Assembly: GCA_004431415.1 (NCBI GenBank)
Contig: QPMI01000547.1
Span: forward strand, 1-52,425
DNA from: Cyanophora paradoxa CCMP329
Lineage: Eukaryota > Plantae > Glaucophyta
DNA length: 52,425 nucleotides
Reading direction: 5' to 3'
Positions 5,003-35,069 of the stretch are shown here, piece after piece. Each line of letters opens with the position of its first letter. The first letter of the stretch is position 1. The notes beneath the pieces are model-generated. The model saw nothing but the letters and a program-made list of their open reading frames with translations. It did not search any database and had not been told where the DNA came from. The translations under genes and the position numbers were made by a program.

Positions 5003-5005
5003 AGA

Positions 5006-5032
5006 GAGCCTTCTCATCGCTTCGGCGACCGC
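5006..5032 (+). repeat. Left terminal inverted repeat (27 bp); also at 11023, 15155, 20326, 24462, 29617
   Basis: Inverted match to the right TIR; always preceded by ...GCGATCGCCGGTC-AGA. Confidence 0.9.
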
Positions 5033-5927: not shown

Positions 5928-7457
5928 ATGGCGCACGCCCGCTAAACGCCGATCTGGACGCGCTTCTAGAGCTGGCGAAAGCGGAACTCGACGATGACGA
6001 TGATGATGGCGATGCTATGGAGCTCGAGGAGGAGGCCGCGGCTGTAGTCGCTGCAGCAGCAGCTAAGGCGGCGGAGCTTCTGGCGCAGGCGAGGCTCCCC
6101 CGCAAGCCGCGAATGTACACATGGTGAATGAGATGATCGAACGCATCGTGGATGGTTCGCCTGCTTGCTGCAGCCGCGCGTCGCGCTGTTTGATTGCGAT
6201 TCTCCCCCCCCCCCACACACCCAGCTGAGACCGACTTCGTTCGCAGGCGACTTCGACGCGAAGTTCTTCTGGGCATTTCGCATGACGCCAACGACTTTCA
6301 CGTTCATTCACGATCGTATCCAACACAGCGAGGTGTACATCACCACTGGGAATGTCCACAGCTACCTGTAGAACTGCAGCTTGCAATTACATTGAGGAGA
6401 CTTGGCAGAGGACAGGCTATGAAGCTCTCCAAGAGATTTCCCTGTATCACAGGGCTTCATTTCGGAAGGTCTCTCTTTAGTTCAGTGGCGTTGTTTTCAT
6501 AATGAGTTCTGATGCGGTTCCACAGCTATCTCCCGCACACAGGCAGCCATATGTGAATATTTTCGAAAGACACATATGCAAGATCTGTTTCCCCGTACCC
6601 CGGAGCAGAAGGCAAGGGCACGGGCAGGATTTGAGCGCCTCGCAAAGCATTGGAACAAAAGGAATTTTACGCAACGGGGTTCACCAAGTGTGTCGGCGCA
6701 GTTGTACACACAGGCGTGACAGTTGAAGCAAGCAGTTTTGAACTGATCTCTATATTGCGCAGATGAAGCATGTTCATTATCGAGAACCCTCCGCAAGAGC
6801 ATCGATCCAAGTACTTCAGTCGTAAAGGAAGGAAGTCATTGAACGTCCAAGCAGCTTGCAATGCTAATGGTCTTTTCAACGACGTTAGTTCTTGTTATAT
6901 ATATATATGATCATGATAACTCAGCACACGTGATCATGTTGGGTCACTGATTACGTATACGTGAACAGGTGAGCATTAAATACCCTGGCAGCGTGCATGA
7001 TCAGAGAGTGTATGACAATTCAAGGCTGCACAAGCAGCGGAACACCATCTACAGTGACGGCGATTACAGGCTTGTCGACAGAGGGTACCGCATTGAGAAG
7101 GGTGCCTCCCCCACACAGCATACACGGTGCGTACATGTGCTCATGTTCAGATCTGATCTGACATTGACGAGCGCACATGCACATGTACAGATCTCGATGA
7201 TCTTGCAGCCGGCATACTGCAGGCAAAGTTAAACTATGACTTTGTGCATTCCATGTGCAGGAAGGTCATCGAGCGTGCATTTGGAAGGCTGAAGATGCGA
7301 TGGCTTGAGCTAGGCATCGGGATCAATCGCAAGCACCTTGGGCGCTCTTGTCAAACCATCTACGTAAGTACCCCCCTGGAACAAGATATTGAAACCTGAC
7401 ATACAATGGCGCAGGTGTGCTTCCTTCTACACAACATTTGCGAGCTCGGCGATTATC
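5928..7457 (+). pseudogene. Harbinger DDE transposase, C-terminally truncated copy
   Basis: Same exons as 11950-13638, broken after VCFLLHNICELGDY by the chimeric junction; several 1-bp deletions. Confidence 0.85.
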
Positions 7458-10400
7458 AGAAAAGACCGCTGACAGAGGACATGACGGGCGGGGGTACACA
7501 TACCGTCTGTAGAGCAAGGAGAGGAGGGGTATTGGAATGGGGCGCTCGGCTGTTCCCATCCACACGGCCTTGTTCCGTCGCGTGTACGGTGGGCGGACGT
7601 ACAGCTCGACCTCTTGCTCCACCTCCTCCATAATCCCCTGCGCATTTGGCTGCGAATTGCGTGAGCCGCCGCGACGACGATGGCGCCAGGAACGTGCTCA
7701 CCTCCTGTACTTTGTCGACCCTCACCTTGAACGCGGTCGCCCCCAGTTCGTCCACCTCCGGATACTCCTCTCCGGAGCTGTGGGATCGGTCCCCGCGGTT
7801 CAAGAGGCGGTGATTGGGGACGTCCGACTTTGCACCGATCTGCTCCAGCGCCGCTGTGACTTGCTTCAGCGCTGGCATGCTGTTGTGTGATACACGGCCT
7901 GTCCCGTACTTCTCCTGCGTCGAAGTTCAGTTCATGTACGTACCCCCCCCACGCTCCCTTACCCCCCGGGCGCACCACTATCTCGGGCTTGGAGCGTATC
8001 CTTGTGAAGGCCTCGTTCTCCGGGTCCTCGCGATAGACAGCCGCCGGATTCGCGAGCGCCTCGTGGCACGCCTGCCAAGAGACCGAAAGGCAGGCACGGT
8101 TCGGTTGTGGGTTAATCGCTAGGGGGTATCGAAGATTCTGTACCTTCAGCGGCCTCGGTGCTGGGTGGGGGGCTGCTCCGGGGTCCTCCCGGCATCCCGC
8201 CTTGCCTCCCACTGAGCTCGGGCCCTCCTTGCATCTCCGTGTTCATCCTCGTCGATTGCCAGTGCGAGATCGACGAGGCCCTTGAAGATGAGCTGGTTGA
8301 TGGTTGTTGCCCACCGTCGGAATCGAGCGATGCGGACAAGGCTTGAGAAGAAGATGCCAATGGAGATGCTGCTCGCTGGCCGGCAAGCAGGCGCAGGACC
8401 TCCATCCCACTCGTGCGGATGCGCTGCAAAGCCTTTTCGTCGATTGGTCTGCCGGCGCCGCTGTTGACGTTCTTGTTTCCTGTTCCCGACTGGCACTTCT
8501 CCACCAGCCTCTTGACTTCTTCGAACTCCGAGAGACCCGCCCGCGCCTTTCTCTTACGCCCCTTCTCTCTTGGCATCTCTTGCGCCAACATGTCCTCCAC
8601 AGCCGCTGCCGTAAGCTCGATACATGCATGCAACCTGTGACAGGAAGATCAGATCAGAAACGATGGCGTACCCCCCCCCCCCCGCCCCCCCCGCGCACCA
8701 AAGTTGGAGTGACTCGCCTTCGCTTGTCTGCTGTTGCGCTGACTGAAGTAAGCGGATCAGACTTCGGAGCTGCTCCTTTGCTTCTTCTGTTGTGCCTAGA
8801 TTTAAAGCTTGCTGGCTGAGCCCGAGAGTTGCCTGCATGCGTGGCAGATTGACTTGGGCCTGACCATTCTTAACCTGAGCGTGAAGTTGAGCTCGACGAA
8901 GTACAAGATTTAGATGAAGAATGTCACCTCCAGGAATGCATCAGCAAGAGACTGAGCTCGAGCTGGCTCGCGCTCCATATCTGCCTCTGCAGGTCGCCAG
9001 GCAAGAAGTTGTGTGAGCACCGCTGCAGCTGACCGGATATCGCCATCGACAGGAGCTGCAATGCAGTTAGACCACAACGAAGCGCCACTTAGCAGTCATT
9101 CAAATGCAACTCACAGTAGAAATCAAGCGACTCGCCGCCTGACTGACCAAAGAAGTACAGCTCGATCCATTGGGAGAGGTACAGCTTCGATTGTACAGCA
9201 TACGAGCGGCTATCTGCACGAGGCGCTGCGGGTTCCTGGAACTCCAGAGCCAAGATTACCTGCACACAAAGACACAATCAGCAGATGCAGCAAGCAGCAA
9301 GCATGTCAAACTTGCCAGGTCTATTTCACGCAATCTCCTCTCACGGGCGTAGATCTTGTTCTTGTAGAACCACTTGGCTCGCTCCTTTAGCCAATCGTGA
9401 TGCTTGTCTCGCATTTCCTTGTCCACTTCGAATTGCCCGTGCTCGCCTACAGAACCAAGGCCAAGAAATGCGCACTGCATCGGCATTCAGTACATTCACA
9501 CGATGGAAGAACAATAGAAGCTCACATCAATGTCAATGAGTTCCTCGTAATGCGAAGAACTCTTTGTCTCGTCACCGTTGCCGTCGTTTACATTGCGTGC
9601 AGCCTCTTGCTGGCGTGTCGACTCGAGCGCCACCTAAGATCATATTCAGAACAGAATCGCAAGATAAGTTGCAGTAAGAACTGCACCGAGCTCAAGAATT
9701 GCTTCAGAGCATTGAGCTCGTCCAGGGTCCGGTCCCGGGCCGGTTCGCCGCGAAACCGCACTCGGCAAGACCTAGCCTGAGCTTGAGCCGCCTGTGCTGT
9801 TATCTACACGAGCATGAGCTGACATCATAGGTACTCTGACAAATCCGTGCACCAGATCGAGCCAATCAACACAACTTTGAAATATGTCGCCTCGCTGTTC
9901 TCCATTCGTTTCCACGAACAAGTCCCGCAGCGCTTGCAAGGCTTGAGGTGGGGCAAGTTGATGAGAACGCCCTCTACGTAGTGCAGCATGGGGTCCAAAG
10001 CTGCACAACATATGAGAGATGCAGCAGTTAGGCCTCCGGGCTCGTGCACCAACATCGTGGCGGCGGTGTACACTGGGTCCGGGGCCGGGGGAGGGCAGGG
10101 CCGGGGGAGGGGCAGGGCCGGGGGAGGGGCAGGGCCGGGGGAGGGCGGGGTCGGGGGAGATGGAGGGGCGGGGCCCGGGGGATGGGCGGGGTCGGGGGGA
10201 GGGGCGGGGCCGGGGGGAGGGGCGGGGTCGGGGGGAGATGGAGGGGCGGGGCCCGGGGGATGGGCGGGGTCGGGGGGAGGGGCGGGGCCGGGGGGAGGGG
10301 CGGGCAGTACCCCTCTCCCCCGCGTCGCACCGGCCCCCGCCGCGCCGGTCAGCGTGGGGACAAGCTCAAGGCTGGAGCGAGCGCCGCCGCTTGCCGTGCT

Positions 10401-10539
10401 GCCCCCGAGGCCGCCCCCGAGGCCACCACCCGCCGTGCGGCCCGCCAGAAGGGGATTGGGAGATGAGCTGGAGGTCCACTCCATCTCTTCCTCCCCAAAG
10501 AGAGTGCTCCTGGGGTCGACATGCTGCGGAGTCGGGCAT
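7455..10539 (-). pseudogene. ORF3 copy lacking its last two exons
   Basis: Matches 1453-4522; the junction falls in the intron between the ...LLYRR and VANTE... exons. Confidence 0.75.
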
Positions 10540-10717
10540 AAGACACCGAAAAGCAGCGATCGCTTGGCCAATGAGAAGGCGGTGGACGTCAAGCCCGCGG
10601 CGACCGTTAGAACTGAGAACCCAGAAGCGATCGCCGGCCCAGCAGCTCTTTGTTAGAGGTCGGACTCGCTGGGTATGGCGCCGAACACAAAGCGATCGCC
10701 GAGCAATGAGAAGGCTC

Positions 10718-11019
10718 TATGCGCGGGGCAGATCTAGCGATCCAATTGAATAGGGAATCTCTATGCGAGCAAGCTCGCAGCGCTACGGGAGGCGGGCACG
10801 CACTGCAGGCGTTGGCGTTGGCTGGTGCGACGAACTTGAAGCAGCTCCTGTGCAAGCGATCGCCGGTCTATGCGCGGGGCAGATCTAGCGATCCAATTGA
10901 ATAGGGAATCTCTATGCGAGCAAGCTCGCAGCGCTACGGGAGGCGGGCACGCACTGCAGGCGTTGGCGTTGGCTGGTGCGACGAACTTGAAGCAGCTCCT
11001 GTGCAAGCGATCGCCGGTC
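10718..11019. repeat. Two copies of 151-bp spacer R
   Basis: Identical to 4701-5002. Confidence 0.95.
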
Positions 11020-11949
11020 AGAGAGCCTTCTCATCGCTTCGGCGACCGCCAGGCCCTGGTACCGAGTACTCCGGGGCAATCGCTAGCGCGAACCGTCGGA
11101 CGACGGACGCGGCGCCGGCGATCGCTTAAAAAAGGCCCCGGCCCGATCCGAGCCCATGGCCGGCGGGCATAGTGAACATAGTGCCAAAATGTCGCCCCGA
11201 AATCACGGTTTTTAGAAGGATCGGAAGAAAGCGCGCCCAAGCAGGACCGAGGGGCGGTTCCGGCACGTACCTACTGACTCAGAGCTGCTTGCGCTGGGCC
11301 CGCCGGCCGACGCCATGAGACCCGGTTGAGAGCTCGAATCCCTGCGCGCCGCCTTACAGCGGCCGAGGATGGGGCGAAGGCTGCAGAATTCGATGATGTG
11401 CACCTCGGACAAGCGAAAGCGCGTAGCTAGCGCGCCGCCGGCGCCGCGGGTGAGCCGATGAAGCCAGCGATGTGTACTCCTCGCGTGCGCGGGCGCGGCG
11501 ACGTCGCCTGCCGGGCGGGCGTGGCGCCGCGGGGCTGAGCACGGCGCGCGCACGGACAGAGTCGGGCCCCAGCGCAGCCCGCGCACCGCAGACACTTCAG
11601 ATGCGCGGAAGAGACGATGCTGTCGAGCTCGCCTCCGTGAAAGTCTGACGGCAGATGAGCTGGCCGTGCAGGAAAGAATGCGCGGCGGTTGGCTGCGTGA
11701 GAGCAGACCGGATGGGATGCGACGCGACCCGCGCCGTTATAGTCTGAACAAACAACGAAACGAGGGCGTCCCGCGTCCAGCGAAGCCTCCCGAACAGCGC
11801 GCGCCGCACACACGCGGCGGCCCACCGCCAGCGAAGCCGTCGTCGTCTCGGAACTCTGAGGTCGTACGGAGAGGTAAGTGAGGGCGCGAAGAACGACAGC
11901 GAAGACCGAGGAGCCCACCGCGAGGGATACCAGATCTCTTCTGACGGCG

Positions 11950-13638
11950 ATGGCGCACGCCCCGCTAAACGCCGATCTGGACGCGCTTCTAGAGCTGGCG
12001 AAAGCGGAACTCGACGATGACGATGATGATGGCGATGCTATGGAGCTCGAGGAGGAGGCCGCGGCTGTAGTCGCTGCAGCAGCAGCTAAGGCGGCGGAGC
12101 TTCTGGCGCAGGCGAGGCTCCCCCGCAAGCCGCGAATGTACACATGGTGGAATGAGATGATCGAACGCATCGTGGATGGTTCGCCTGCTTGCTGCAGCCG
12201 CGCGTCGCGCTGTTTGATTGCGATTCTCCCCCCCCCCCCACACACACCCAGCTGAGACCGACTTCGTTCGCAGGCGACTTCGACGCGAAGTTCTTCTGGG
12301 CATTTCGCATGACGCCAACGACTTTCACGTTCATTCACGATCGTATCCAACACAGCGAGGTGTACATCACCACTGGGAATGTCCCACAGCTACCTGTAGA
12401 ACTGCAGCTTGCAATTACATTGAGGAGACTTGGGCAGAGGACAGGCTATGAAGCTCTCCAAGGAGATTTCCCTGTATCACAGGGCTTCATTTCGGAAGGT
12501 CTCTCTTTAGTTCAGTGGCGTTGTTTTCATAATGAGTTCTGATGCGGTTCCACAGCTATCTCCCGCACACAGGCAGCCATATGTGAATATTTTCGAAAGA
12601 CACATATGCAAGATCTGTTTCCCCGTACCCCGGAGCAGAAGGCAAGGGCACGGGCAGGATTTGAGCGCCTCGCAAAGCATTGGAACAAAAGGAATTTTTA
12701 CGCAACGGGGTTCACCAAGTGTGTCGGCGCAGTTGGTACACACAGGCGTGACAGTTGAAGCAAGCAGTTTTGAACTGATCTCTATATTGCGCAGATGGAA
12801 GCATGTTCATTATCGAGAACCCTCCGCAAGAGCATCGATCCAAGTACTTCAGTCGTAAAGGAAGGAAGTCATTGAACGTCCAAGCAGCTTGCAATGCTAA
12901 TGGTCTTTTCAACGACGTTAGTTCTTGTTATATATATATATGATCATGATAACTCAGCACACGTGATCATGTTGGGTCACTGATTACGTATACGTGAACA
13001 GGTGAGCATTAAATACCCTGGCAGCGTGCATGATCAGAGAGTGTATGACAATTCAAGGCTGCACAAGCAGCGGAACACCATCTACAGTGACGGCGATTAC
13101 AGGCTTGTCGACAGAGGGTACCGCATTGAGAAGGGGTGCCTCCCCCCACACAGCATACACGGTGCGTACATGTGCTCATGTTCAGATCTGATCTGACATT
13201 GACGAGCGCACATGCACATGTACAGATCTCGATGATCTTGCAGCCGGCATACTGCAGGCAAAGTTAAACTATGACTTTGTGCATTCCATGTGCAGGAAGG
13301 TCATCGAGCGTGCATTTGGAAGGCTGAAGATGCGATGGCTTGAGCTAGGCATCGGGATCAATCGCAAGCACCTTGGGCGCTCTTGTCAAACCATCTACGT
13401 AAGTACCCCCCTGGAACAAGATATTGAAACCTGACATACAATGGCGCAGGTGTGCTTCCTTCTACACAACATTTGCGAGCTCGGCGATTATCCCTGGCCG
13501 GAGGAAGAGGCCCCGGAGGCAGACGCTCCGGGCGACGTTGAGGGTGCACCTGCGGAAGGACCCCCGAACATCCTTGAGCAGGGTGGGGCACGTGCCGAGC
13601 GGCTATGGCAGGCGGATCACCTGTACGGCATCCAGTAG
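11950..13638 (+). CDS. PIF/Harbinger (HARBI1-like, DDE_Tnp_4-type) transposase, 7 exons, ~425 aa, apparently intact
   Basis: Six in-phase GT-AG introns. Spliced product contains AFRMTPTTF, PVELQLAITLRRLG, KCVGAVDG (D1, split by intron 12736-12794), YFSRKGRKSLNVQA, YPGSVHD, LVDRGY (D2), HSMCRKVIERAFGRLKMRW (E) and CFLLHNIC, all hallmark Harbinger motifs. Confidence 0.95.
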
Positions 13639-13646
13639 CTAAGTAG

Positions 13647-15095
13647 CTAGCTTGAAGCCCATCTGCATCCGCATCGGGCTCGAAGGGCCTCTTGCGGCGC
13701 TTCTCCTTCTCCTCCTTCTCTTTCTTCTCCTTCTCCTTCTTCTCCTTCTCCTTCTGTTCTTTGATCTCGTTCATCTGTGTTCTCGAAATTGACATGAGCA
13801 CGAGTGTATGTGATGCAGCGTGCACCAAAACCGACGGTACTCTGCCTTGTCCGCGGCTTCCTGTTCACGAATGTCATTGCTGCGGCTGAGCTGGTCTCGT
13901 ACCCCTCGACGCTGCTGGAGAGCATAGACATCCCTCAGCTGCCACCTCGGTCGGATTGCGCCTGTTGATCTGATGCTTCGTAATCCCTCGCCAGGCCTAG
14001 GCGGGCGGCCGGGCAGAGCAGGGCTTGACAAGCATGAAGTAAGTATGTGCAAGGCAGTGCTGAAAAGGAAGCAATGCATACCCTGAGCTCGATCCTGGAC
14101 TCCCCTGCCTTGGAACTGGATGGATGTCCTGGGGAAAAAGATGAGAGGGGTACACAGTCAAGGAGGGTGGGCATGTACCCGTCCCCATCTGATTCCATAG
14201 AGAAGGGCGGGTTCAGCTCTGGTGAGTTGCCGAGCCACGGCTTGATTTTCTGCTGAATTCATGAGAACTCGGGCAGAGCTCAATCTTTGAAACACGCACC
14301 ATGTAGTCGCCCTGGGAAAGGAAGTAGTGCCAGGGGAAGTCAGGGTCCGTGAGCTTCTTGCCGCTTGTCTCGGCAGCAAGGTAGATTTTGAACTTGTCGT
14401 GGGCCTTGTTCCAACGGTCCAAGAACTTCACACGCCCGGCCGTAACATCAGCACGTGCAGCCTCGACGAAGGATTTGATGTTCGGCCGCTGGGGAGATTG
14501 TCAGGCAAATAAGCAGAGATGAAGCACCACCGAACACATGTACCAGAGAGCCCTGTCTGAGCCATTCGTCGAAGGCCGAACTGATCACGGCGGGCCTGAG
14601 CTTCTGCTTGCTGCCCGGCTTTTTATTGTCGGCCATTCCCTTGGCGACAATGATACCGACGGCCAGAGTCCATGCCTCTGGATTGTTCTTCCATTCGAAC
14701 CTGCAAACACTTGCCCATGTAAGGTCACCCATGTTAGAAAAAGTCGGGGCTTGGTGCAAAAGCACCGCGCAGTACGCGAAGGGGAAGGTACTGGTGGCAA
14801 GACCATCGTGCCGGGCGATGGCGACCTGCGAGTGAAAGCGTGAGCGCGAGCTCCAGACTAAAGATGAGCATGAGAAGAGCCCACTTAGCAGGCGATGTCC
14901 CGTGCGGCCGAGACGAAGCAGAGCGGCTGCAGAACATCAATTTAAGCGGGGCAAATCGAACGTAAAGCATGCGGAAAGCGCACGGTGCTCCGTTTGGGAA
15001 GTTCTCCGAGGCAGAGGAGATGAGCACCTCCGTCATCGGCGGTTCAACGGGAATCCTGCGGGCGCAATTGAGCATGGCAGAGAGTAGTTCAGTCA
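13647..15095 (-). CDS. Myb/SANT(trihelix)-like DNA-binding partner protein of the Harbinger element; probably 5'-truncated
   Basis: Spliced exons FEWKNNPEAWTLAVG...FDEWLRQGSL | RPNIK...KFLDRWNKAHDKFK...TSG...FPWHYF...YM | KIKPWLGNSPELNPP with spaced Trp residues; KE-rich coiled-coil tail with KRRKR. The assignment rests on this pattern plus the established two-gene Harbinger organisation. Confidence 0.65.
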
Positions 15096-15154
15096 TGGCG
15101 TTGGCTGGTGCGACGAACTTGAAGCAGCTCCTGTGCAAGCGATCGCCGGTCAGA

Positions 15155-18100
15155 GAGCCTTCTCATCGCTTCGGCGACCGCCAGGCCCTGGTACCGAGTA
15201 CTCCGGGGCAATCGCTAGCGCGAACCGTCGGACGACGGACGCGGCGCCGGCGATCGCTTAAAAAAGGCCCCGGCCCGATCCGAGCCCATGGCCGGCGGGC
15301 ATAGTGAACATAGTGCCAAAATGTCGCCCCGAAATCACGGTTTTTAGAAGGATCGGAAGAAAGCGCGCCCAAGCAGGACCGAGGGGCGGTTCCGGCACGT
15401 ACCTACTGACTCAGAGCTGCTTGCGCTGGGCCGCCGGCCGACGCCATGAGACCCGGTTGAGAGCTCGAATCCCTGCGCGCCGCCTTACAGCGGCCGAGGA
15501 TGGGGCGAAGGCTGCAGAATTCGATGATGTGCACCTCGGACAAGCGAAAGCGCGTAGCTAGCGCGCCGCCGGCGCCGCGGGTGAGCCGATGAAGCCAGCG
15601 ATGTGTACTCCTCGCGTGCGCGGGCGCGGCGACGTCGCCTGCCGGGCGGGCGTGGCGCCGCGGGGCTGAGCACGGCGCGCGCACGGCAGTGCACATGCGC
15701 ATCGGGCGGTGTTGACGTTCGCGCGCTGCAGCTGCATGCATGGCGCCGGCCGGGCGCGCGGAAGTTGGTTTTTTTTGCTATTCGTCCCCCTGCGCTTCTC
15801 CCCCCCCTTCATTCCCCCCGAAGTTAGCCACCGGTGGCTAACTTGCGATCGAAGGGTACAGGGATCACCCTCCTGAAATTGATCTCTTACAAAACCAACG
15901 CTGTCGTAGAACCCTACACTATCTGCAAGCGGAATCAGGCAATCTGCAGTCCTACGAAAGCCTTGCACCGCTGCAGGAGCCCTTTTGCCTGCTCTTCGTT
16001 CGCGAAGATGTCAGGATGCCCCGCGCGGGGCGCGCGGAACCACTCTGTGGAGGCGGCCACAAATGGTGCGCATGCTGTGGGATCGCGCAGGTGGTGGCCA
16101 CTGCACACCACCCGGCCCAGCGCGGGGAAAACAGGACCTCCAGGACGCGGTCGACCCGGCACTTCGCTTTGAAAGTAGACCCAGCGGTCGTGCGCGCGTT
16201 CATCTGGTATGCTGGATCAGAGAGCTCGACGATCGCATGCACCACCCTGCAACCAGTGTCATGATCGGCACGCTGCGCAACGACACCGTTACAGATAGAA
16301 AAAGGAAAGGAAAGGAAGAGAAAGTAAGAAAGAGAAGGGGGAAGAAAGACAGAATGAAAGAAAAGAAAGGAAAGGACGCACGGCCAGTGGTCCCACTCCA
16401 GGTTCTTGAAGCTCTTCAGGATGTGCATGATCGCCTCCGGCGTAACGTTCACGTCGTCGAGCCGTCGGACTTCGCATGCGACGGTGCATGCACCTAGGCC
16501 TTGCCGGGCCGTGCACGCCAGGTCTCCGTCGTTGGGTGGGAGTCGGGCAAGAACCTCCACGTATGCGCGCACTGCAGGGCTCGAGGCTCTCGCCCCGCGC
16601 ACCGCAGTTGCGATTTCCGCAACGCTGTCGCGCACTGAACGATAGCCGTTCTCCTCCCGCGTCATTGCGGGAAACATGTGCAGCTTCGCCTTCAGGGTGG
16701 TGCTCATCTGGTTAAGGAAGCGGTTCTCGGTGTTCGCGACTCTGCGACGAGAAATCAGAAAAGACCGCTGACAGAGGACATGACGGGCGGGGTACACATA
16801 CCGTCTGTAGAGCAAGGAGAGGAGGGGTATTGGAATGGGGCGCTCGGCTGTTCCCATCCACACGGCCTTGTTCCGTCGCGTGTACGGTGGGCGGACGTAC
16901 AGCTCGACCTCTTGCTCCACCTCCTCCATAATCCCCTGCGCATTTGGCTGCGAATTGCGTGAGCCGCCGCGACGACGATGGCGCCAGGAACGTGCTCACC
17001 TCCTGTACTTTGTCGACCCTCACCTTGAACGCGGTCGCCCCCAGTTCGTCCACCTCCGGATACTCCTCTCCGGAGCTGTGGGATCGGTCCCGCGGTTCAA
17101 GAGGCGGTGATTGGGGACGTCCGACTTTGCACCGATCTGCTCCAGCGCCGCTGTGACTTGCTTCAGCGCTGGCATGCTGTTGTGTGATACACGGCCTGTC
17201 CCGTACTTCTCCTGCGTCGAAGTTCAGTTCATGTACGTACCCCCCCCACGCTCCCTTACCCCCCGGGCGCACCACTATCTCGGGCTTGGAGCGTATCCTT
17301 GTGAAGGCCTCGTTCTCCGGGTCCTCGCGATAGACAGCCGCCGGATTCGCGAGCGCCTCGTGGCACGCCTGCCAAGAGACCGAAAGGCAGGCACGGTTCG
17401 GTTGTGGGTTAATCGCTAGGGGGTATCGAAGATTCTGTACCTTCAGCGGCCTCGGTGCTGGGTGGGGGGCTGCTCCGGGGTCCTCCCCGGCATCCCGCCT
17501 TGCCTCCCACTGAGCTCGGGCCCTCCTTGCATCTCCGTGTTCATCCTCGTCGATTGCCAGTGCGAGATCGACGAGGCCCTTGAAGATGAGCTGGTTGATG
17601 GTTGTTGCCCACCGTCGGAATCGAGCGATGCGGACAAGGCTTGAGAAGAAGATGCCAATGGAGATGCTGCTCGCTGGCCCGGCAAGCAGGCGCAGGACCT
17701 CCATCCCACTCGTGCGGATGCGCTGCAAAGCCTTTTCGTCGATTGGTCTGCCGGCGCCGCTGTTGACGTTCTTGTTTCCTGTTCCCGACTGGCACTTCTC
17801 CACCAGCCTCTTGACTTCTTCGAACTCCGAGAGACCCGCCCGCGCCTTTCTCTTACGCCCCTTCTCTCTTGGCATCTCTTGCGCCAACATGTCCTCCACA
17901 GCCGCTGCCGTAAGCTCGATACATGCATGCAACCTGTGACAGGAAGATCAGATCAGAAACGATGGCGTACCCCCCCCCCCCCGCGGCCCCCCGCGCACCA
18001 AAGTTGGAGTGACTCGCCTTCGCTTGTCTGCTGTTGCGCTGACTGAAGTAAGCGGATCAGACTTCGGAGCTGCTCCTTTGCTTCTTCTGTTGTGCCTAGA

Positions 18101-20020
18101 TTTAAAGCTTGCTGGCTGAGCCCGAGAGTTGCCTGCATGCGTGGCAGATTGACTTGGGCCTGACCATTCTTAACCTGAGCGTGAAGTTGAGCTCGACGAA
18201 GTACAAGATTTAGATGAAGAATGTCACCTCCAGGAATGCATCAGCAAGAGACTGAGCTCGAGCTGGCTCGCGCTCCATATCTGCCTCTGCAGGTCGCCAG
18301 GCAAGAAGTTGTGTGAGCACCGCTGCAGCTGACCGGATATCGCCATCGACAGGAGCTGCAATGCAGTTAGACCACAACGAAGCGCCACTTAGCAGTCATT
18401 CAAATGCAACTCACAGTAGAAATCAAGCGACTCGCCGCCTGACTGACCAAAGAAGTACAGCTCGATCCATTGGGAGAGGTACAGCTTCGATTGTACAGCA
18501 TACGAGCGGCTATCTGCACGAGGCGCTGCGGGTTCCTGGAACTCCAGAGCCAAGATTACCTGCACACAAAGACACAATCAGCAGATGCAGCAAGCAGCAA
18601 GCATGTCAAACTTGCCAGGTCTATTTCACGCAATCTCCTCTCACGGGCGTAGATCTTGTTCTTGTAGAACCACTTGGCTCGCTCCTTTAGCCAATCGTGA
18701 TGCTTGTCTCGCATTTCCTTGTCCACTTCGAATTGCCCGTGCTCGCCTACAGAACCAAGGCCAAGAAATGCGCACTGCATCGGCATTCAGTACATTCACA
18801 CGATGGAAGAACAATAGAAGCTCACATCAATGTCAATGAGTTCCTCGTAATGCGAAGAACTCTTTGTCTCGTCACCGTTGCCGTCGTTTACATTGCGTGC
18901 AGCCTCTTGCTGGCGTGTCGACTCGAGCGCCACCTAAGATCATATTCAGAACAGAATCGCAAGATAAGTTGCAGTAAGAACTGCACCGAGCTCAAGAATT
19001 GCTTCAGAGCATTGAGCTCGTCCAGGGTCCGGTCCCGGGCCGGTTCGCCGCGAAACCGCACTCGGCAAGACCTAGCCTGAGCTTGAGCCGCCTGTGCTGT
19101 TATCTACACGAGCATGAGCTGACATCATAGGTACTCTGACAAATCCGTGCACCAGATCGAGCCAATCAACACAACTTTGAAATATGTCGCCTCGCTGTTC
19201 TCCATTCGTTTCCACGAACAAGTCCCGCAGCGCTTGCAAGGCTTGAGGTGGGGGCAAGTTGATGAGAACGCCCTCTACGTAGTGCAGCATGGGGTCCAAA
19301 GCTGCACAACATATGAGAGATGCAGCAGTTAGGCCTCCGGGCTCGTGCACCAACATCGTGGCGGCGGTGTACACTGGGTCCGGGGCCGGGGGGAGGGGCA
19401 GGGCCGGGGGGAGGGGCAGGGCCGGGGGGAGGGGCAGGGCCGGGGGGAGGGGCGGGGTCGGGGGGAGATGGAGGGGCGGGGCCCGGGGGATGGGCGGGGT
19501 CGGGGGGAGGGGCGGGGCCGGGGGGAGGGGCGGGGTCGGGGGGAGATGGAGGGGCGGGGCCCGGGGATGGGCGGGGTCGGGGGGAGGGGCGGGGCCGGGG
19601 GGAGGGGCGGGCAGTACCCCTCTCCCCGCGTCGCACCGGCCCCGCCGCGCCGGTCAGCGTGGGGACAAGCTCAAGGCTGGAGCGAGCGCCGCCGCTTGCC
19701 GTGCTGCCCCGAGGCCGCCCCGAGGCCACCACCCGCCGTGCGGCCCGCCAGAAGGGGATTGGGAGATGAGCTGGAGGTCCACTCCATCTCTTCCTCCCCA
19801 AAGAGAGTGCTCCTGGGGTCGACATGCTGCGGAGTCGGGCATAAGACACCGAAAAGCAGCGATCGCTTGGCCAATGAGAAGGCGGTGGACGTCAAGCCCG
19901 CGGCGACCGTTAGAACTGAGAACCCAGAAGCGATCGCCGGCCCAGCAGCTCTTTGTTAGAGGTCGGACTCGCTGGGTATGGCGCCGAACACAAAGCGATC
20001 GCCGAGCAATGAGAAGGCTC
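15155..20020 (+). mobile_element. Form X element (complete, TIR to TIR, ~4.87 kb)
   Basis: Left TIR at 15155, X branch at 15687, right TIR 19995-20020. Confidence 0.9.
15935..19842 (-). CDS. ORF3, spliced unknown protein (start uncertain)
   Basis: Same exon chain as copy 1; long ORFs 16712-17932 and 15952-16929 carry the central exons. Confidence 0.78.
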
Positions 20021-20322
20021 TATGCGCGGGGCAGATCTAGCGATCCAATTGAATAGGGAATCTCTATGCGAGCAAGCTCGCAGCGCTACGGGAGGCGGGC
20101 ACGCACTGCAGGCGTTGGCGTTGGCTGGTGCGACGAACTTGAAGCAGCTCCTGTGCAAGCGATCGCCGGTCTATGCGCGGGGCAGATCTAGCGATCCAAT
20201 TGAATAGGGAATCTCTATGCGAGCAAGCTCGCAGCGCTACGGGAGGCGGGCACGCACTGCAGGCGTTGGCGTTGGCTGGTGCGACGAACTTGAAGCAGCT
20301 CCTGTGCAAGCGATCGCCGGTC
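20021..20322. repeat. Two copies of 151-bp spacer R
   Basis: Identical to 4701-5002. Confidence 0.95.
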
Positions 20323-21252
20323 AGAGAGCCTTCTCATCGCTTCGGCGACCGCCAGGCCCTGGTACCGAGTACTCCGGGGCAATCGCTAGCGCGAACCGTC
20401 GGACGACGGACGCGGCGCCGGCGATCGCTTAAAAAAGGCCCCGGCCCGATCCGAGCCCATGGCCGGCGGGCATAGTGAACATAGTGCCAAAATGTCGCCC
20501 CGAAATCACGGTTTTTAGAAGGATCGGAAGAAAGCGCGCCCAAGCAGGACCGAGGGGCGGTTCCGGCACGTACCTACTGACTCAGAGCTGCTTGCGCTGG
20601 GCCCGCCGGCCGACGCCATGAGACCCGGTTGAGAGCTCGAATCCCTGCGCGCCGCCTTACAGCGGCCGAGGATGGGGCGAAGGCTGCAGAATTCGATGAT
20701 GTGCACCTCGGACAAGCGAAAGCGCGTAGCTAGCGCGCCGCCGGCGCCGCGGGTGAGCCGATGAAGCCAGCGATGTGTACTCCTCGCGTGCGCGGGCGCG
20801 GCGACGTCGCCTGCCGGGCGGGCGTGGCGCCGCGGGGCTGAGCACGGCGCGCGCACGGACAGAGTCGGGCCCCAGCGCAGCCCGCGCACCGCAGACACTT
20901 CAGATGCGCGGAAGAGACGATGCTGTCGAGCTCGCCTCCGTGAAAGTCTGACGGCAGATGAGCTGGCCGTGCAGGAAAGAATGCGCGGCGGTTGGCTGCG
21001 TGAGAGCAGACCGGATGGGATGCGACGCGACCCGCGCCGTTATAGTCTGAACAAACAACGAAACGAGGGCGTCCCGCGTCCAGCGAAGCCTCCCGAACAG
21101 CGCGCGCCGCACACACGCGGCGGCCCACCGCCAGCGAAGCCGTCGTCGTCTCGGAACTCTGAGGTCGTACGGAGAGGTAAGTGAGGGCGCGAAGAACGAC
21201 AGCGAAGACCGAGGAGCCCACCGCGAGGGATACCAGATCTCTTCTGACGGCG

Positions 21253-22939
21253 ATGGCGCACGCCCCGCTAAACGCCGATCTGGACGCGCTTCTAGAGCTG
21301 GCGAAAGCGGAACTCGACGATGACGATGATGATGGCGATGCTATGGAGCTCGAGGAGGAGGCCGCGGCTGTAGTCGCTGCAGCAGCAGCTAAGGCGGCGG
21401 AGCTTCTGGCGCAGGCGAGGCTCCCCCGCAAGCCGCGAATGTACACATGGTGGAATGAGATGATCGAACGCATCGTGGATGGTTCGCCTGCTTGCTGCAG
21501 CCGCGCGTCGCGCTGTTTGATTGCGATTCTCCCCCCCCCCCCCACACACCCAGCTGAGACCGACTTCGTTCGCAGGCGACTTCGACGCGAAGTTCTTCTG
21601 GGCATTTCGCATGACGCCAACGACTTTCACGTTCATTCACGATCGTATCCAACACAGCGAGGTGTACATCACCACTGGGAATGTCCCACAGCTACCTGTA
21701 GAACTGCAGCTTGCAATTACATTGAGGAGACTTGGGCAGAGGACAGGCTATGAAGCTCTCCAAGGAGATTTCCCTGTATCACAGGGCTTCATTTCGGAAG
21801 GTCTCTCTTTAGTTCAGTGGCGTTGTTTTCATAATGAGTTCTGATGCGGTTCCACAGCTATCTCCCGCACACAGGCAGCCATATGTGAATATTTTCGAAA
21901 GACACATATGCAAGATCTGTTTCCCCGTACCCCGGAGCAGAAGGCAAGGGCACGGGCAGGATTTGAGCGCCTCGCAAAGCATTGGAACAAAAGGAATTTT
22001 TACGCAACGGGGTTCACCAAGTGTGTCGGCGCAGTTGGTACACACAGGCGTGACAGTTGAAGCAAGCAGTTTTGAACTGATCTCTATATTGCGCAGATGG
22101 AAGCATGTTCATTATCGAGAACCCTCCGCAAGAGCATCGATCCAAGTACTTCAGTCGTAAAGGAAGGAAGTCATTGAACGTCCAAGCAGCTTGCAATGCT
22201 AATGGTCTTTTCAACGACGTTAGTTCTTGTTATATATATATATGATCATGATAACTCAGCACACGTGATCATGTTGGGTCACTGATTACGTATACGTGAA
22301 CAGGTGAGCATTAAATACCCTGGCAGCGTGCATGATCAGAGAGTGTATGACAATTCAAGGCTGCACAAGCAGCGGAACACCATCTACAGTGACGGCGATT
22401 ACAGGCTTGTCGACAGAGGGTACCGCATTGAGAAGGGGTGCCTCCCCCACACAGCATACACGGTGCGTACATGTGCTCATGTTCAGATCTGATCTGACAT
22501 TGACGAGCGCACATGCACATGTACAGATCTCGATGATCTTGCAGCCGGCATACTGCAGGCAAAGTTAAACTATGACTTTGTGCATTCCATGTGCAGGAAG
22601 GTCATCGAGCGTGCATTTGGAAGGCTGAAGATGCGATGGCTTGAGCTAGGCATCGGGATCAATCGCAAGCACCTTGGGCGCTCTTGTCAAACCATCTACG
22701 TAAGTACCCCCCTGGAACAAGATATTGAAACCTGACATACAATGGCGCAGGTGTGCTTCCTTCTACACAACATTTGCGAGCTCGGCGATTATCCCTGGCC
22801 GGAGGAAGAGGCCCCGGAGGCAGACGCTCCGGGCGACGTTGAGGGTGCACCTGCGGAAGGACCCCCGAACATCCTTGAGCAGGGTGGGGCACGTGCCGAG
22901 CGGCTATGGCAGGCGGATCACCTGTACGGCATCCAGTAG
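21253..22939 (+). CDS. PIF/Harbinger DDE transposase (one C-run 1-bp deletion near 22445, probably a sequencing error)
   Basis: Same 7 exons and DDE motifs as 11950-13638. Confidence 0.9.
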
Positions 22940-22947
22940 CTAAGTAG

Positions 22948-24402
22948 CTAGCTTGAAGCCCCATCTGCATCCGCATCGGGCTCGAAGGGCCTCTTGCGGC
23001 GCTTCTCCTTCTCCTCCTTCTCTTTCTTCTCCTTCTCCTTCTTCTCCTTCTCCTTCTGTTCTTTGATCTCGTTCATCTGTGTTCTCGAAATTGACATGAG
23101 CACGAGTGTATGTGATGCAGCGTGCACCAAAAACCGACGGTACTCTGCCTTGTCCGCGGCTTCCTGTTCACGAATGTCATTGCTGCGGCTGAGCTGGTCT
23201 CGTACCCCCTCGACGCTGCTGGAGAGCATAGACATCCCCTCAGCTGCCACCTCGGTCGGATTGCGCCTGTTGATCTGATGCTTCGTAATCCCCTCGCCAG
23301 GCCTAGGCGGGCGGCCGGGCAGAGCAGGGCTTGACAAGCATGAAGTAAGTATGTGCAAGGCAGTGCTGAAAAGGAAGCAATGCATACCCTGAGCTCGATC
23401 CTGGACTCCCCTGCCTTGGAACTGGATGGATGTCCTGGGGAAAAAGATGAGAGGGGTACACAGTCAAGGAGGGTGGGCATGTACCCCGTCCCCATCTGAT
23501 TCCATAGAGAAGGGCGGGTTCAGCTCTGGTGAGTTGCCGAGCCACGGCTTGATTTTCTGCTGAATTCATGAGAACTCGGGCAGAGCTCAATCTTTGAAAC
23601 ACGCACCATGTAGTCGCCCTGGGAAAGGAAGTAGTGCCAGGGGAAGTCAGGGTCCGTGAGCTTCTTGCCGCTTGTCTCGGCAGCAAGGTAGATTTTGAAC
23701 TTGTCGTGGGCCTTGTTCCAACGGTCCAAGAACTTCACACGCCCGGCCGTAACATCAGCACGTGCAGCCTCGACGAAGGATTTGATGTTCGGCCGCTGGG
23801 GAGATTGTCAGGCAAATAAGCAGAGATGAAGCACCACCGAACACATGTACCAGAGAGCCCTGTCTGAGCCATTCGTCGAAGGCCGAACTGATCACGGCGG
23901 GCCTGAGCTTCTGCTTGCTGCCCGGCTTTTTATTGTCGGCCATTCCCTTGGCGACAATGATACCGACGGCCAGAGTCCATGCCTCTGGATTGTTCTTCCA
24001 TTCGAACCTGCAAACACTTGCCCATGTAAGGTCACCCATGTTAGAAAAAGTCGGGGCTTGGTGCAAAAGCACCGCGCAGTACGCGAAGGGGAAGGTACTG
24101 GTGGCAAGACCATCGTGCCGGGCGATGGCGACCTGCGAGTGAAAGCGTGAGCGCGAGCTCCAGACTAAAGATGAGCATGAGAAGAGCCCACTTAGCAGGC
24201 GATGTCCCGTGCGGCCGAGACGAAGCAGAGCGGCTGCAGAACATCAATTTAAGCGGGGCAAATCGAACGTAAAGCATGCGGAAAGCGCACGGTGCTCCGT
24301 TTGGGAAGTTCTCCGAGGCAGAGGAGATGAGCACCTCCGTCATCGGCGGTTCAACGGGAATCCTGCGGGCGCAATTGAGCATGGCAGAGAGTAGTTCAGT
24401 CA
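22948..24402 (-). CDS. Myb/SANT-like partner protein, probably 5'-truncated
   Basis: Copy of 13647-15095; last exon QMNEIKEQKEKEKK...DADGASS* is in frame here. Confidence 0.65.
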
Positions 24403-24461
24403 TGGCGTTGGCTGGTGCGACGAACTTGAAGCAGCTCCTGTGCAAGCGATCGCCGGTCAGA

Positions 24462-27400
24462 GAGCCTTCTCATCGCTTCGGCGACCGCCAGGCCCTGGTA
24501 CCGAGTACTCCGGGGCAATCGCTAGCGCGAACCGTCGGACGACGGACGCGGCGCCGGCGATCGCTTAAAAAAGGCCCCGGCCCGATCCGAGCCCATGGCC
24601 GGCGGGCATAGTGAACATAGTGCCAAAATGTCGCCCCGAAATCACGGTTTTTAGAAGGATCGGAAGAAAGCGCGCCCAAGCAGGACCGAGGGCGGTTCCG
24701 GCACGTACCTACTGACTCAGAGCTGCTTGCGCTGGGCCCGCCGGCCGACGCCATGAGACCCGGTTGAGAGCTCGAATCCCTGCGCGCCGCCTTACAGCGG
24801 CCGAGGATGGGGCGAAGGCTGCAGAATTCGATGATGTGCACCTCGGACAAGCGAAAGCGCGTAGCTAGCGCGCCGCCGGCGCCGCGGGTGAGCCGATGAA
24901 GCCAGCGATGTGTACTCCTCGCGTGCGCGGGCGCGGCGACGTCGCCTGCCGGGCGGGCGTGGCGCCGCGGGGCTGAGCACGGCGCGCGCACGGCAGTGCA
25001 CATGCGCATCGGGCGGTGTTGACGTTCGCGCGCTGCAGCTGCATGCATGGCGCCGGCCGGGCGCGCGGAAGTTGGTTTTTTTTGCTATTCGTCCCCCCTG
25101 CGCTTCTCCCCCCCTTCATTCCCCCGAAGTTAGCCACCGGTGGCTAACTTGCGATCGAAGGGTACAGGGATCACCCTCCTGAAATTGATCTCTTACAAAA
25201 CCAACGCTGTCGTAGAACCCTACACTATCTGCAAGCGGAATCAGGCAATCTGCAGTCCTACGAAAGCCTTGCACCGCTGCAGGAGCCCTTTTGCCTGCTC
25301 TTCGTTCGCGAAGATGTCAGGATGCCCCGCGCGGGGCGCGCGGAACCACTCTGTGGAGGCGGCCACAAATGGTGCGCATGCTGTGGGATCGCGCAGGTGG
25401 TGGCCACTGCACACCACCCGGCCCCAGCGCGGGGAAAACAGGACCTCCAGGACGCGGTCGACCCGGCACTTCGCTTTGAAAGTAGACCCAGCGGTCGTGC
25501 GCGCGTTCATCTGGTATGCTGGATCAGAGAGCTCGACGATCGCATGCACCACCCCTGCAACCAGTGTCATGATCGGCACGCTGCGCAACGACACCGTTAC
25601 AGATAGAAAAAGGAAAGGAAAGGAAGAGAAAGTAAGAAAGAGAAGGGGGGAAGAAAGACAGAATGAAAGAAAAGAAAGGAAAGGACGCACGGCCAGTGGT
25701 CCCACTCCAGGTTCTTGAAGCTCTTCAGGATGTGCATGATCGCCTCCGGCGTAACGTTCACGTCGTCGAGCCGTCGGACTTCGCATGCGACGGTGCATGC
25801 ACCTAGGCCTTGCCGGGCCGTGCACGCCAGGTCTCCGTCGTTGGGTGGGAGTCGGGCAAGAACCTCCACGTATGCGCGCACTGCAGGGCTCGAGGCTCTC
25901 GCCCCGCGCACCGCAGTTGCGATTTCCGCAACGCTGTCGCGCACTGAACGATAGCCGTTCTCCTCCCGCGTCATTGCGGGAAACATGTGCAGCTTCGCCT
26001 TCAGGGTGGTGCTCATCTGGTTAAGGAAGCGGTTCTCGGTGTTCGCGACTCTGCGACGAGAAATCAGAAAAGACCGCTGACAGAGGACATGACGGGCGGG
26101 GGTACACATACCGTCTGTAGAGCAAGGAGAGGAGGGGTATTGGAATGGGGCGCTCGGCTGTTCCCATCCACACGGCCTTGTTCCGTCGCGTGTACGGTGG
26201 GCGGACGTACAGCTCGACCTCTTGCTCCACCTCCTCCATAATCCCCTGCGCATTTGGCTGCGAATTGCGTGAGCCGCCGCGACGACGATGGCGCCAGGAA
26301 CGTGCTCACCTCCTGTACTTTGTCGACCCTCACCTTGAACGCGGTCGCCCCCAGTTCGTCCACCTCCGGATACTCCTCTCCGGAGCTGTGGGATCGGTCC
26401 CCGCGGTTCAAGAGGCGGTGATTGGGGACGTCCGACTTTGCACCGATCTGCTCCAGCGCCGCTGTGACTTGCTTCAGCGCTGGCATGCTGTTGTGTGATA
26501 CACGGCCTGTCCCGTACTTCTCCTGCGTCGAAGTTCAGTTCATGTACGTACCCCCCCCACGCTCCCTTACCCCCCGGGCGCACCACTATCTCGGGCTTGG
26601 AGCGTATCCTTGTGAAGGCCTCGTTCTCCGGGTCCTCGCGATAGACAGCCGCCGGATTCGCGAGCGCCTCGTGGCACGCCTGCCAAGAGACCGAAAGGCA
26701 GGCACGGTTCGGTTGTGGGTTAATCGCTAGGGGGTATCGAAGATTCTGTACCTTCAGCGGCCTCGGTGCTGGGTGGGGGCTGCTCCGGGGTCCTCCCGGC
26801 ATCCCGCCTTGCCTCCCACTGAGCTCGGGCCCTCCTTGCATCTCCGTGTTCATCCTCGTCGATTGCCAGTGCGAGATCGACGAGGCCCTTGAAGATGAGC
26901 TGGTTGATGGTTGTTGCCCACCGTCGGAATCGAGCGATGCGGACAAGGCTTGAGAAGAAGATGCCAATGGAGATGCTGCTCGCTGGCCCGGCAAGCAGGC
27001 GCAGGACCTCCATCCCACTCGTGCGGATGCGCTGCAAAGCCTTTTCGTCGATTGGTCTGCCGGCGCCGCTGTTGACGTTCTTGTTTCCTGTTCCCGACTG
27101 GCACTTCTCCACCAGCCTCTTGACTTCTTCGAACTCCGAGAGACCCGCCCGCGCCTTTCTCTTACGCCCCTTCTCTCTTGGCATCTCTTGCGCCAACATG
27201 TCCTCCACAGCCGCTGCCGTAAGCTCGATACATGCATGCAACCTGTGACAGGAAGATCAGATCAGAAACGATGGCGTACCCCCCCCCCCCCCCCCCCCCC
27301 GCGCACCAAAGTTGGAGTGACTCGCCTTCGCTTGTCTGCTGTTGCGCTGACTGAAGTAAGCGGATCAGACTTCGGAGCTGCTCCTTTGCTTCTTCTGTTG

Positions 27401-29312
27401 TGCCTAGATTTAAAGCTTGCTGGCTGAGCCCGAGAGTTGCCTGCATGCGTGGCAGATTGACTTGGGCCTGACCATTCTTAACCTGAGCGTGAAGTTGAGC
27501 TCGACGAAGTACAAGATTTAGATGAAGAATGTCACCTCCAGGAATGCATCAGCAAGAGACTGAGCTCGAGCTGGCTCGCGCTCCATATCTGCCTCTGCAG
27601 GTCGCCAGGCAAGAAGTTGTGTGAGCACCGCTGCAGCTGACCGGATATCGCCATCGACAGGAGCTGCAATGCAGTTAGACCACAACGAAGCGCCACTTAG
27701 CAGTCATTCAAATGCAACTCACAGTAGAAATCAAGCGACTCGCCGCCTGACTGACCAAAGAAGTACAGCTCGATCCATTGGGAGAGGTACAGCTTCGATT
27801 GTACAGCATACGAGCGGCTATCTGCACGAGGCGCTGCGGGTTCCTGGAACTCCAGAGCCAAGATTACCTGCACACAAAGACACAATCAGCAGATGCAGCA
27901 AGCAGCAAGCATGTCAAACTTGCCAGGTCTATTTCACGCAATCTCCTCTCACGGGCGTAGATCTTGTTCTTGTAGAACCACTTGGCTCGCTCCTTTAGCC
28001 AATCGTGATGCTTGTCTCGCATTTCCTTGTCCACTTCGAATTGCCCGTGCTCGCCTACAGAACCAAGGCCAAGAAATGCGCACTGCATCGGCATTCAGTA
28101 CATTCACACGATGGAAGAACAATAGAAGCTCACATCAATGTCAATGAGTTCCTCGTAATGCGAAGAACTCTTTGTCTCGTCACCGTTGCCGTCGTTTACA
28201 TTGCGTGCAGCCTCTTGCTGGCGTGTCGACTCGAGCGCCACCTAAGATCATATTCAGAACAGAATCGCAAGATAAGTTGCAGTAAGAACTGCACCGAGCT
28301 CAAGAATTGCTTCAGAGCATTGAGCTCGTCCAGGGTCCGGTCCCGGGCCGGTTCGCCGCGAAACCGCACTCGGCAAGACCTAGCCTGAGCTTGAGCCGCC
28401 TGTGCTGTTATCTACACGAGCATGAGCTGACATCATAGGTACTCTGACAAATCCGTGCACCAGATCGAGCCAATCAACACAACTTTGAAATATGTCGCCT
28501 CGCTGTTCTCCATTCGTTTCCACGAACAAGTCCCGCAGCGCTTGCAAGGCTTGAGGTGGGGCAAGTTGATGAGAACGCCCTCTACGTAGTGCAGCATGGG
28601 GTCCAAAGCTGCACAACATATGAGAGATGCAGCAGTTAGGCCTCCGGGCTCGTGCACCAACATCGTGGCGGCGGTGTACACTGGGTCCGGGGCCGGGGGA
28701 GGGCAGGGCCGGGGGAGGGGCAGGGCCGGGGGAGGGGCAGGGCCGGGGGAGGGCGGGGTCGGGGGGAGATGGAGGGGCGGGGCCCGGGGATGGGCGGGGT
28801 CGGGGGAGGGGCGGGGCCGGGGGAGGGCGGGTCGGGGGAGATGGAGGGCGGGGCCCGGGGATGGGCGGGGTCGGGGGAGGGGCGGGCCGGGGGGAGGGGC
28901 GGGCAGTACCCCTCTCCCCGCGTCGCACCGGCCCCCGCCGCGCCGGTCAGCGTGGGGACAAGCTCAAGGCTGGAGCGAGCGCCGCCGCTTGCCGTGCTGC
29001 CCCGAGGCCGCCCCCGAGGCCACCACCCGCCGTGCGGCCCGCCAGAAGGGATTGGGAGATGAGCTGGAGGTCCACTCCATCTCTTCCTCCCAAAGAGAGT
29101 GCTCCTGGGGTCGACATGCTGCGGAGTCGGGCATAAGACACCGAAAAGCAGCGATCGCTTGGCCAATGAGAAGGCGGTGGACGTCAAGCCCGCGGCGACC
29201 GTTAGAACTGAGAACCCAGAAGCGATCGCCGGCCCAGCAGCTCTTTGTTAGAGGTCGGACTCGCTGGGTATGGCGCCGAACACAAAGCGATCGCCGAGCA
29301 ATGAGAAGGCTC
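24462..29312 (+). mobile_element. Form X element (complete)
   Basis: Left TIR at 24462, X branch at 24994, right TIR 29287-29312. Confidence 0.9.
25241..29134 (-). CDS. ORF3, spliced unknown protein (start uncertain)
   Basis: Last exon VPIMTLVAG...GLQIA* is uninterrupted within ORF 25241-25825. Confidence 0.78.
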
Positions 29313-29613: not shown

Positions 29614-29616
29614 AGA

Positions 29617-35059: not shown

Positions 35060-35069
35060 AGATTCATTT

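Follow-up and report, generated by a model that had tools for sequence, protein, structure and literature searches.

The locus considered here raises the question of whether a long, heavily interrupted reading frame carried by a transposon is a gene in its own right and, if so, what it does for the element that carries it. The frame, termed ORF3, lies on the minus strand (15935-19842) of a 52,425-nt stretch of DNA (contig QPMI01000547.1; hereafter the window), which protein matches place in the glaucophyte Cyanophora paradoxa (EukProt EP00741; gene identifiers of the form tig000.._g..) and which consists of GC-rich eukaryotic DNA built from near-identical repeat units. ORF3 sits between terminal inverted repeats (TIRs) and is oriented inward from the right end of its unit, next to a unit carrying a PIF/Harbinger transposase. 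ORF3 is a real protein-coding gene under purifying selection, and we favor the view, with a probability of roughly 0.55, that it encodes a dedicated nuclear accessory protein of the element and represents a conserved third gene of a C. paradoxa PIF/Harbinger lineage.

The first-pass annotation of the window had recognized ORF3 from a series of short introns that splice in phase into one long protein. We ran a dynamic-programming splice finder, which accepts GT donors, on the ORF3 strand, on the opposite strand and on ten shuffled sequences. From the ORF3 strand it recovered a product of ~1,010 amino acids (ATG at 19842, stop at 15935), but the opposite strand gave 1,070 amino acids and the shuffles 813-1,067 amino acids with 11-19 introns. 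Because the controls yield frames as long as those of the real strand, splicing in phase is no evidence of a gene in this DNA, and a naive search for spliced frames, on which shuffles and opposite strand score nearly as well, was rejected as proof of coding.

Homologs from other loci show that the frame is coding. The longest stop-free piece, used in a word search, retrieved gene models of this element from other C. paradoxa contigs, among them P0001 (499 amino acids), and a HMMER search with P0001 against 1.84 billion representative proteins returned only 11 matches: C. paradoxa fragments, a diverged C. paradoxa subfamily (52-66% identity), three pieces of a locus termed L001, the pair P0016/P0026 and one repeat artefact. 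L001 is a 3.3-kb genomic contig (1-3338; run SRR31724264, with a shorter copy in SRR31724265) whose three pieces are 46-48% identical to P0001, and it is collinear with ORF3 from exon 1 to the stop codon at 45-47% amino acid identity; the introns of the two do not align. Differences between ORF3 and L001 are most frequent at third codon positions (0.39/0.34/0.65 for the three positions, 580 aligned codons), and over 760 codons at 47% identity the proportions of synonymous and nonsynonymous differences (pS 0.71, pN 0.375) give a nonsynonymous-to-synonymous rate ratio (dN/dS) of ~0.24, with dS near saturation. In addition, at least 7 of the 12 introns occupy the same aligned residue in the same phase when a window copy and L001 are predicted independently.

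The family has a third, more distant lineage. P0016 and P0026 (799 and 821 amino acids) are two predicted isoforms of one single-copy C. paradoxa locus, and P0026 aligns collinearly with both halves of ORF3 at 22% identity, sharing with it the motifs IELYF.G, LRLLAGP...GI.F.SL.R, WDH and a C-terminal L[FY]SP..G...C...H.R.P..C. L001 retains the junction of exons 7 and 8 in the same phase, and P0026 runs across it without a break, demonstrating that the two halves are one gene. The earlier description of ORF3 as an orphan thus stands outside the genome, where the family has so far been seen only in Cyanophora-type data, and fails inside it, where there are both a second subfamily borne on transposable elements and the single-copy paralogue.

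The ends of the elements are marked by an imperfect TIR of ~28 bp, whose core, AGAGCCTTCTCAT, is found 12 times in the window against 0.12 expected; left-end copies begin at 5005, 11022, 15154, 20325, 24461 and 29616, and right-end copies finish at 4701, 10718, 20021, 29313, 34456 and 42693. Unit X (15154-20021, 4.87 kb), which holds the studied copy of ORF3, has both a left TIR (15151-15181, plus strand, core at 15154-15166) and a right TIR (19995-20024, minus strand, core at 20021-20009), contains no transposase and has ORF3 as its sole gene. The PIF/Harbinger transposase is carried by unit Y (11022-15153; second copy 20325-24460), in which three collinear plus-strand exons at 22081-22732 match DDE_Tnp_4 (Pfam PF13359; E = 5.6e-6, 1e-8 and 1.2e-3; profile positions 2-153). 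In unit Y only the left end is a TIR: on the right come 58 bp of a 151-bp spacer (15096-15153) and then the left TIR of X, and Y lacks a right TIR of its own. The same core also bounds a Y+X composite (11022-20021), and the two-ended arrangements in the window are either Y+X or X alone, the latter including a stand-alone X unit at 29616-34456. By its TIRs, which it shares with a transposase-encoding partner, X would be a non-autonomous member of the PIF/Harbinger elements.

The start of ORF3 is close to these ends, as had been noted: 179 bp separate ATG 19842 from the outer edge of the right TIR (20021), with end motifs in between. Just upstream of the ATG, the right subterminal region (19855-20021) contains a second, inner TIR tip (19872-19883) as well as a motif that includes the palindrome GCGATCGC and occurs three times; the end-motif copies between ATG 19842 and the TIR edge include those at 19872-19883 and 19928-19939. 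Successive units are separated by whole 151-bp monomers (2, 2, 2, 2, 4 and 2 of them, at 4699-5002, 10716-11019, 20019-20322, 29311-29613, 34454-35059 and 42690-42991), which start exactly at the right TIR, an arrangement that could reflect site-specific insertion into a satellite or else the duplication of each unit together with its spacer. No 3-bp (TWA) target-site duplication (TSD) was seen, GGTCAG preceding the left core and ATGCGC following the right core in every copy, in a comparison where all insertions are in the same 151-bp repeat and no empty site is available. No Myb/SANT-like domain, as expected for the second Harbinger gene, was detected by Pfam in the stop-free pieces of 22951-24243 (minus strand) that were searched.

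The curated gene model confirms a multi-exon, minus-strand gene ending at 15935, divided into 13 exons; of its 12 introns (51-110 nt), 11 are GT-AG and one is GC-AG. Its product measures 891 amino acids from Met 19356 to the stop, or ~1,050 amino acids if a leader from ATG 19842 is counted. C. paradoxa genes have 9.2 introns on average, with 86 bp as the mean intron length (PMC6704402), so numerous short introns are unremarkable in this host. The GC content of ORF3 is far below the mean of the C. paradoxa genome (a PacBio assembly of 712 contigs at 67.6% GC, with genes predicted by BRAKER1/Augustus; PMC6704402), at 52% GC in the 5' half and 61% in the 3' half, and L001 is alike (55% and 62%).

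The conserved core of exon 1 (19135-19356) opens with Met 19356, where the homology to L001 and the alignment to P0026 both begin, and is followed by intron 1 (19134-19077, 58 nt), exon 2 (18987-19076), intron 2 (18986-18934, 53 nt), exon 3 (18826-18933), intron 3 (18825-18775, 51 nt) and exon 4 (18616-18774). Intron 4 (18615-18560, 56 nt) is the GC-AG intron, with the donor GCAAGT; an intron is predicted nearby in L001, by a splice finder limited to GT donors, and its position is not confirmed as shared. Exon 5 (18415-18559) holds the invariant IELYF.G and leads through intron 5 (18414-18356, 59 nt), exon 6 (18228-18355), intron 6 (18227-18175, 53 nt), exon 7 (17999-18174) and intron 7 (17998-17934) to exon 8 (17441-17933), the largest, which contains both the basic motif KGRKRKAR (17863-17840) and LRLLAGP...F.SL. 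Intron 8 (17440-17369, 72 nt) is stop-free and in frame, and is spliced out in models P0001 and P0002. The 3' part comprises exon 9 (17273-17368), intron 9 (17272-17212), exon 10 (17000-17211), intron 10 (16999-16948, 52 nt), exon 11 (16802-16947), intron 11 (16801-16742) and exon 12 (16382-16741), which ends in the conserved EWDHWP (16398-16382); a CT-rich intron 12 (16381-16273, ~110 nt) precedes exon 13 and the stop (15935-16272), within which lies the conserved cluster LFSP.WG...C-x2-H-H-x7-C (16105-16070). Introns 8-12 are reproduced by the C. paradoxa models P0001, P0002 and P0028.

Upstream of Met 19356, exon 1 has a possible 5' extension (19357-19842) that would supply the proline-rich N-terminus ascribed to the protein at first. 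The frame through its 18-bp G/C repeat (19381-19611) is indeed open, none of the three frames on the ORF3 strand having a stop within the repeat. However, a TGA at 19656-19654 lies between the ATG and the repeat, in the frame of ATG 19842, in the studied copy, and the length of the repeat differs among copies by 6, 14, 15, 23 and 25 nt, not all of which are multiples of three. Because the repeat is open in all frames, the TGA is present, and P0026, which lacks a proline-rich leader, begins where Met 19356 aligns, the start at ATG 19842 is only a possible one, and Met 19356 is the safe choice.

As counted previously, the window contains four full and two partial copies of ORF3, all on the minus strand. 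Besides the studied copy, the full ones are copy A (643-4522; ATG at 4522, stop at 643), copy D (25241-29134), whose 3' half is the best preserved in the window, and copy E (30396-34277), which occupies the stand-alone X unit. The partial ones are copy B (7455-10539), which is cut in exon 12, lacks the C-terminus and is joined to the 5' part of Y, and copy F (41760-42516), which consists of the first exon alone, with a right TIR at 42693. ORF3 is thus the more amplified gene of the array, its unit being present in 4+2 copies against 2+1 for the transposase unit. Copy B belongs to a two-ended 5.7-kb deletion derivative (5005-10718), in which the 5' part of Y is fused at 7455-7457 to ORF3 within exon 12; the deletion took the 3' part of the transposase, the inner left TIR and the C-terminus of ORF3.

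Among the ORF3 copies (538-34454), no exon shows a clean substitution; variation is confined to indels of 1 nt in homopolymers, to the 18-bp repeat and to a few G-runs and CT tracts, and the single-base homopolymer gaps are probably long-read errors in repeats that short reads cannot polish. The studied copy lacks a G at 17092, where the loss shifts the frame in exon 10, and at 16248 and 16119, both in exon 13, and each of these bases is present in two or three other copies in the window. As assembled, the frame of this copy is therefore not intact, contrary to its initial description; all three Gs have to be restored for the curated model, and two introns of the first automatic model were artefacts that skirted the 1-nt gaps. 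A majority consensus of the copies, as proposed in the first-pass annotation, was rejected as a standard and used in scripts only, as it is unreliable at 17488/17469 and in the proline-rich repeat. Public C. paradoxa gene models cover the 3' half alone, taking a Met within exon 8 as their start, and vary by copy, probably because residual long-read errors persist in the repeat. In practical terms, the public gene set of C. paradoxa holds only the 3' half of ORF3, in a version that differs per copy, and the 5' half is absent from public annotation. Gene models of the ORF3 type occur on at least 16 contigs and form two subfamilies, and those of the diverged subfamily are shortened and run into the left-end segment that also occurs in the window.

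We searched databases with the exon pieces together with P0001 and P0026, the joined 891-amino acid model being used in scripts only. No DDE/RNase H, HUH, tyrosine or serine recombinase, reverse transcriptase or nuclease domain was detected in ORF3 in Pfam or PDB, and hmmscan found no match at E up to 5 for P0001 or up to 1 for P0012, P0016 and P0026. Two scans of JGI metagenomes, one with a two-sequence alignment and one with the degenerate pattern LRLLAGP...GI.F.SL, came back empty. In the ESM Atlas, P0001 led to fungal DUF6532 (0.87-0.88) and DUF6698 clusters, below the 0.9 threshold for a lead, and P0026 had no match. The motif P-A-S-S-x5-6-F-S after LRLLAG recalls by eye the hAT C-terminal signature (PF05699), but in ORF3 it stands in the middle of the protein and lacks the conserved Glu-Arg; similarly, DUF6532 clusters top the language-model search but have no profile match. 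Both hAT dimerization (PF05699) and DUF6532 (PF20149) were set aside as unsupported leads, with no hmmscan match at E up to 1-5 and no PDB profile chain. Two features of the sequence are nevertheless suggestive. The KGRKRKAR motif, correctly identified from the start, keeps its KGRKR core in L001 and could act as a nuclear import signal, from which we infer a nuclear location, and the C-terminal WDH...C-x2-H-H-x7-C cluster could bind a metal. The protein is probably mostly helical: AlphaFold2 returned all-helical models, in line with the first impression, at a mean predicted local distance difference test score (pLDDT) of 42 for P0001 (8-row alignment) and 46 for P0026 (9-row alignment), a confidence at which the models themselves are unusable.

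Canonical PIF/Harbinger elements encode two proteins, a DDE_Tnp_4 transposase and a Myb/SANT-like ORF1 product, and may be accompanied by non-autonomous partners, as Ping/Pong are by mPing. The elements in the window resemble them in having short imperfect TIRs common to the transposase unit and to shorter, enzyme-less units, an adjoining DDE_Tnp_4 transposase and subterminal repeats of end motifs. Unlike canonical partners, which are non-coding, X carries a 3.9-kb, 13-exon conserved gene; Y, moreover, has no right TIR of its own in the window, and the 3-bp TSD is not visible. By analogy only, ORF3 also resembles VANC of the Arabidopsis VANDAL elements (Mutator-like), an extra, family-specific and fast-diverging gene in a DNA transposon of a host that methylates transposable elements; VANC belongs to a different superfamily, however, and ORF3 matches no Pfam family. 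As in Pack-MULE or other Pack-type elements, non-transposase coding sequence lies between TIRs and is amplified with the element, but Pack cargo is usually fragmentary, chimeric and recently copied from a known host gene, whereas ORF3 is full length with a dN/dS of ~0.24, and its nearest single-copy paralogue, P0026, is just 22% identical.

A full-length, constrained gene that lies between Harbinger ends and whose two subfamilies are modeled on at least 16 contigs argues for a function dedicated to the element and against a passively captured fragment, a distinction drawn in the first-pass annotation that the collinearity of both halves with a 47% identical homolog, the dN/dS value, the shared introns and the position inside TIRs all uphold. 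The 13-exon gene, read inward from the right end, would encode a third protein of the Harbinger lineage, and ORF3-only X units would depend on the DDE_Tnp_4 transposase supplied by neighboring Y. Acting in trans in the nucleus, the ORF3 protein may help or control the transposase/Myb complex at element ends, or it may protect copies from host silencing based on 5-methylcytosine (5mC). Because 5mC is present on DNA transposons in C. paradoxa (PMC12344493), an anti-silencing role is conceivable; by analogy with other systems, roles in anti-silencing, end recognition or target choice are equally conceivable. ORF3 could be linked by neither sequence nor fold to a known accessory protein, and we infer both its expression and its role in transposition or silencing.

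Several observations weigh against an accessory function. As first reported, the protein has no recognized domain: Pfam assigned no family to any exon piece, spliced model, P0026 or piece of L001, no sequence in PDB matched and profile searches found no chain at E up to 10, and the 1.84 billion representatives held nothing informative on function. At pLDDT 42/46, the fold, the helical content and the metal site are guesses. All close matches are EukProt gene models and none is a transcript-derived protein, and the gene identifiers of ORF3 are absent from the supplements of the genome paper. Exons are identical among the copies in the window, which makes a dN/dS comparison, and with it a test of selection within the family, impossible there, and L001, at only 3.3 kb, is too short to show co-occurrence with a Harbinger transposase outside the C. 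paradoxa genome. Finally, the single-copy P0026 leaves room for a host origin or for domestication.

This last point bears on a possible though rather unlikely alternative, in which ORF3 descends from a host gene (a P0026-type ancestor) captured by a Harbinger element and travels as a passenger with a host-type job, or as a decoy, without a role in transposition. P0026/P0016 form one locus that is collinear with both halves of ORF3 and has its key motifs in common, and X units hold no other gene. Any capture would nevertheless be ancient, since P0026 retains just 22% identity against 45-66% among the lineages borne on transposable elements, and ORF3 has since evolved under constraint inside elements; P0026, which has no relatives outside the C. 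paradoxa genome, could equally be a domesticated copy. That ORF3 has no function at all, being a decaying or artefactual frame in GC-rich repeat DNA that can always be spliced, is the least credible of the explanations and has been largely refuted. Shuffled sequences and the opposite strand do yield spliced frames of ~1,000 amino acids, the studied copy does contain three frameshifts and an in-frame stop in its leader, and public models do cover the 3' half only and differ between copies. But chance or decay would leave neither 760 collinear codons with a third-position excess and a dN/dS of ~0.24, nor shared intron positions and phases, nor a full-length distant paralogue, and the frameshifts are 1-base homopolymer gaps that differ among otherwise identical copies, as long-read errors do.

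Quite improbable, too, is that ORF3 is itself a mobility enzyme, an unrecognized recombinase or nuclease that moves X or lays units head to tail, which would make X an autonomous element of a new kind with Harbinger-like ends. Such an enzyme would accommodate X standing alone between two TIRs, the head-to-tail trains spaced by whole 151-bp monomers, the greater number of ORF3 units than transposase units, and acidic, His and Cys residues that are invariant in three lineages. Yet with E allowed up to 1-5 none of the families of DDE/RNase H, HUH, tyrosine/serine recombinase or nuclease enzymes appeared, the models, of low confidence, contain helices only, and the same TIR core flanks a genuine DDE_Tnp_4 gene, which is sufficient for mobility. 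An accessory protein of the element remains our preferred reading. A bolder version of it, which we regard as a long shot, holds that ORF3 founds a new family of nuclear proteins encoded by transposable elements and endows a Harbinger lineage with an ability that the superfamily is not known to have: the protein steers insertions to sites beside resident copies or shields copies from 5mC, with P0026 as a domesticated descendant; steering of insertions would explain the head-to-tail trains spaced by whole monomers.

If ORF3 is an accessory gene of this kind, a large third gene kept by selection would widen the known coding repertoire of the PIF/Harbinger superfamily, the more so since this gene can travel by itself between two TIRs and is more numerous than the transposase. 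To our knowledge, the mobile elements of glaucophytes are almost undescribed, and the window would offer a tractable system of a helper plus a gene-carrying passenger in this group.

Two further features of the repeats were observed. A 596-bp left-end segment recurs across the window, with peptide-coding stretches at 15582-15719, 5432-5527, 11451-11546, 20754-20849, 24889-25026 and 30045-30182. The diverged-subfamily models P0009, P0017 and P0032 end in the peptide of this segment, which is 67-84% identical against ~55% in their ORF3 part; either the element ends seem to be better conserved than their cargo, or the models seem to span a deletion or joint. Toward the right of the window, a 7-kb unit without a Pfam match is duplicated (34757-41762 and 42690-49680) at 98% identity, with long open frames on both strands and a GC content that reaches 84% in stretches.

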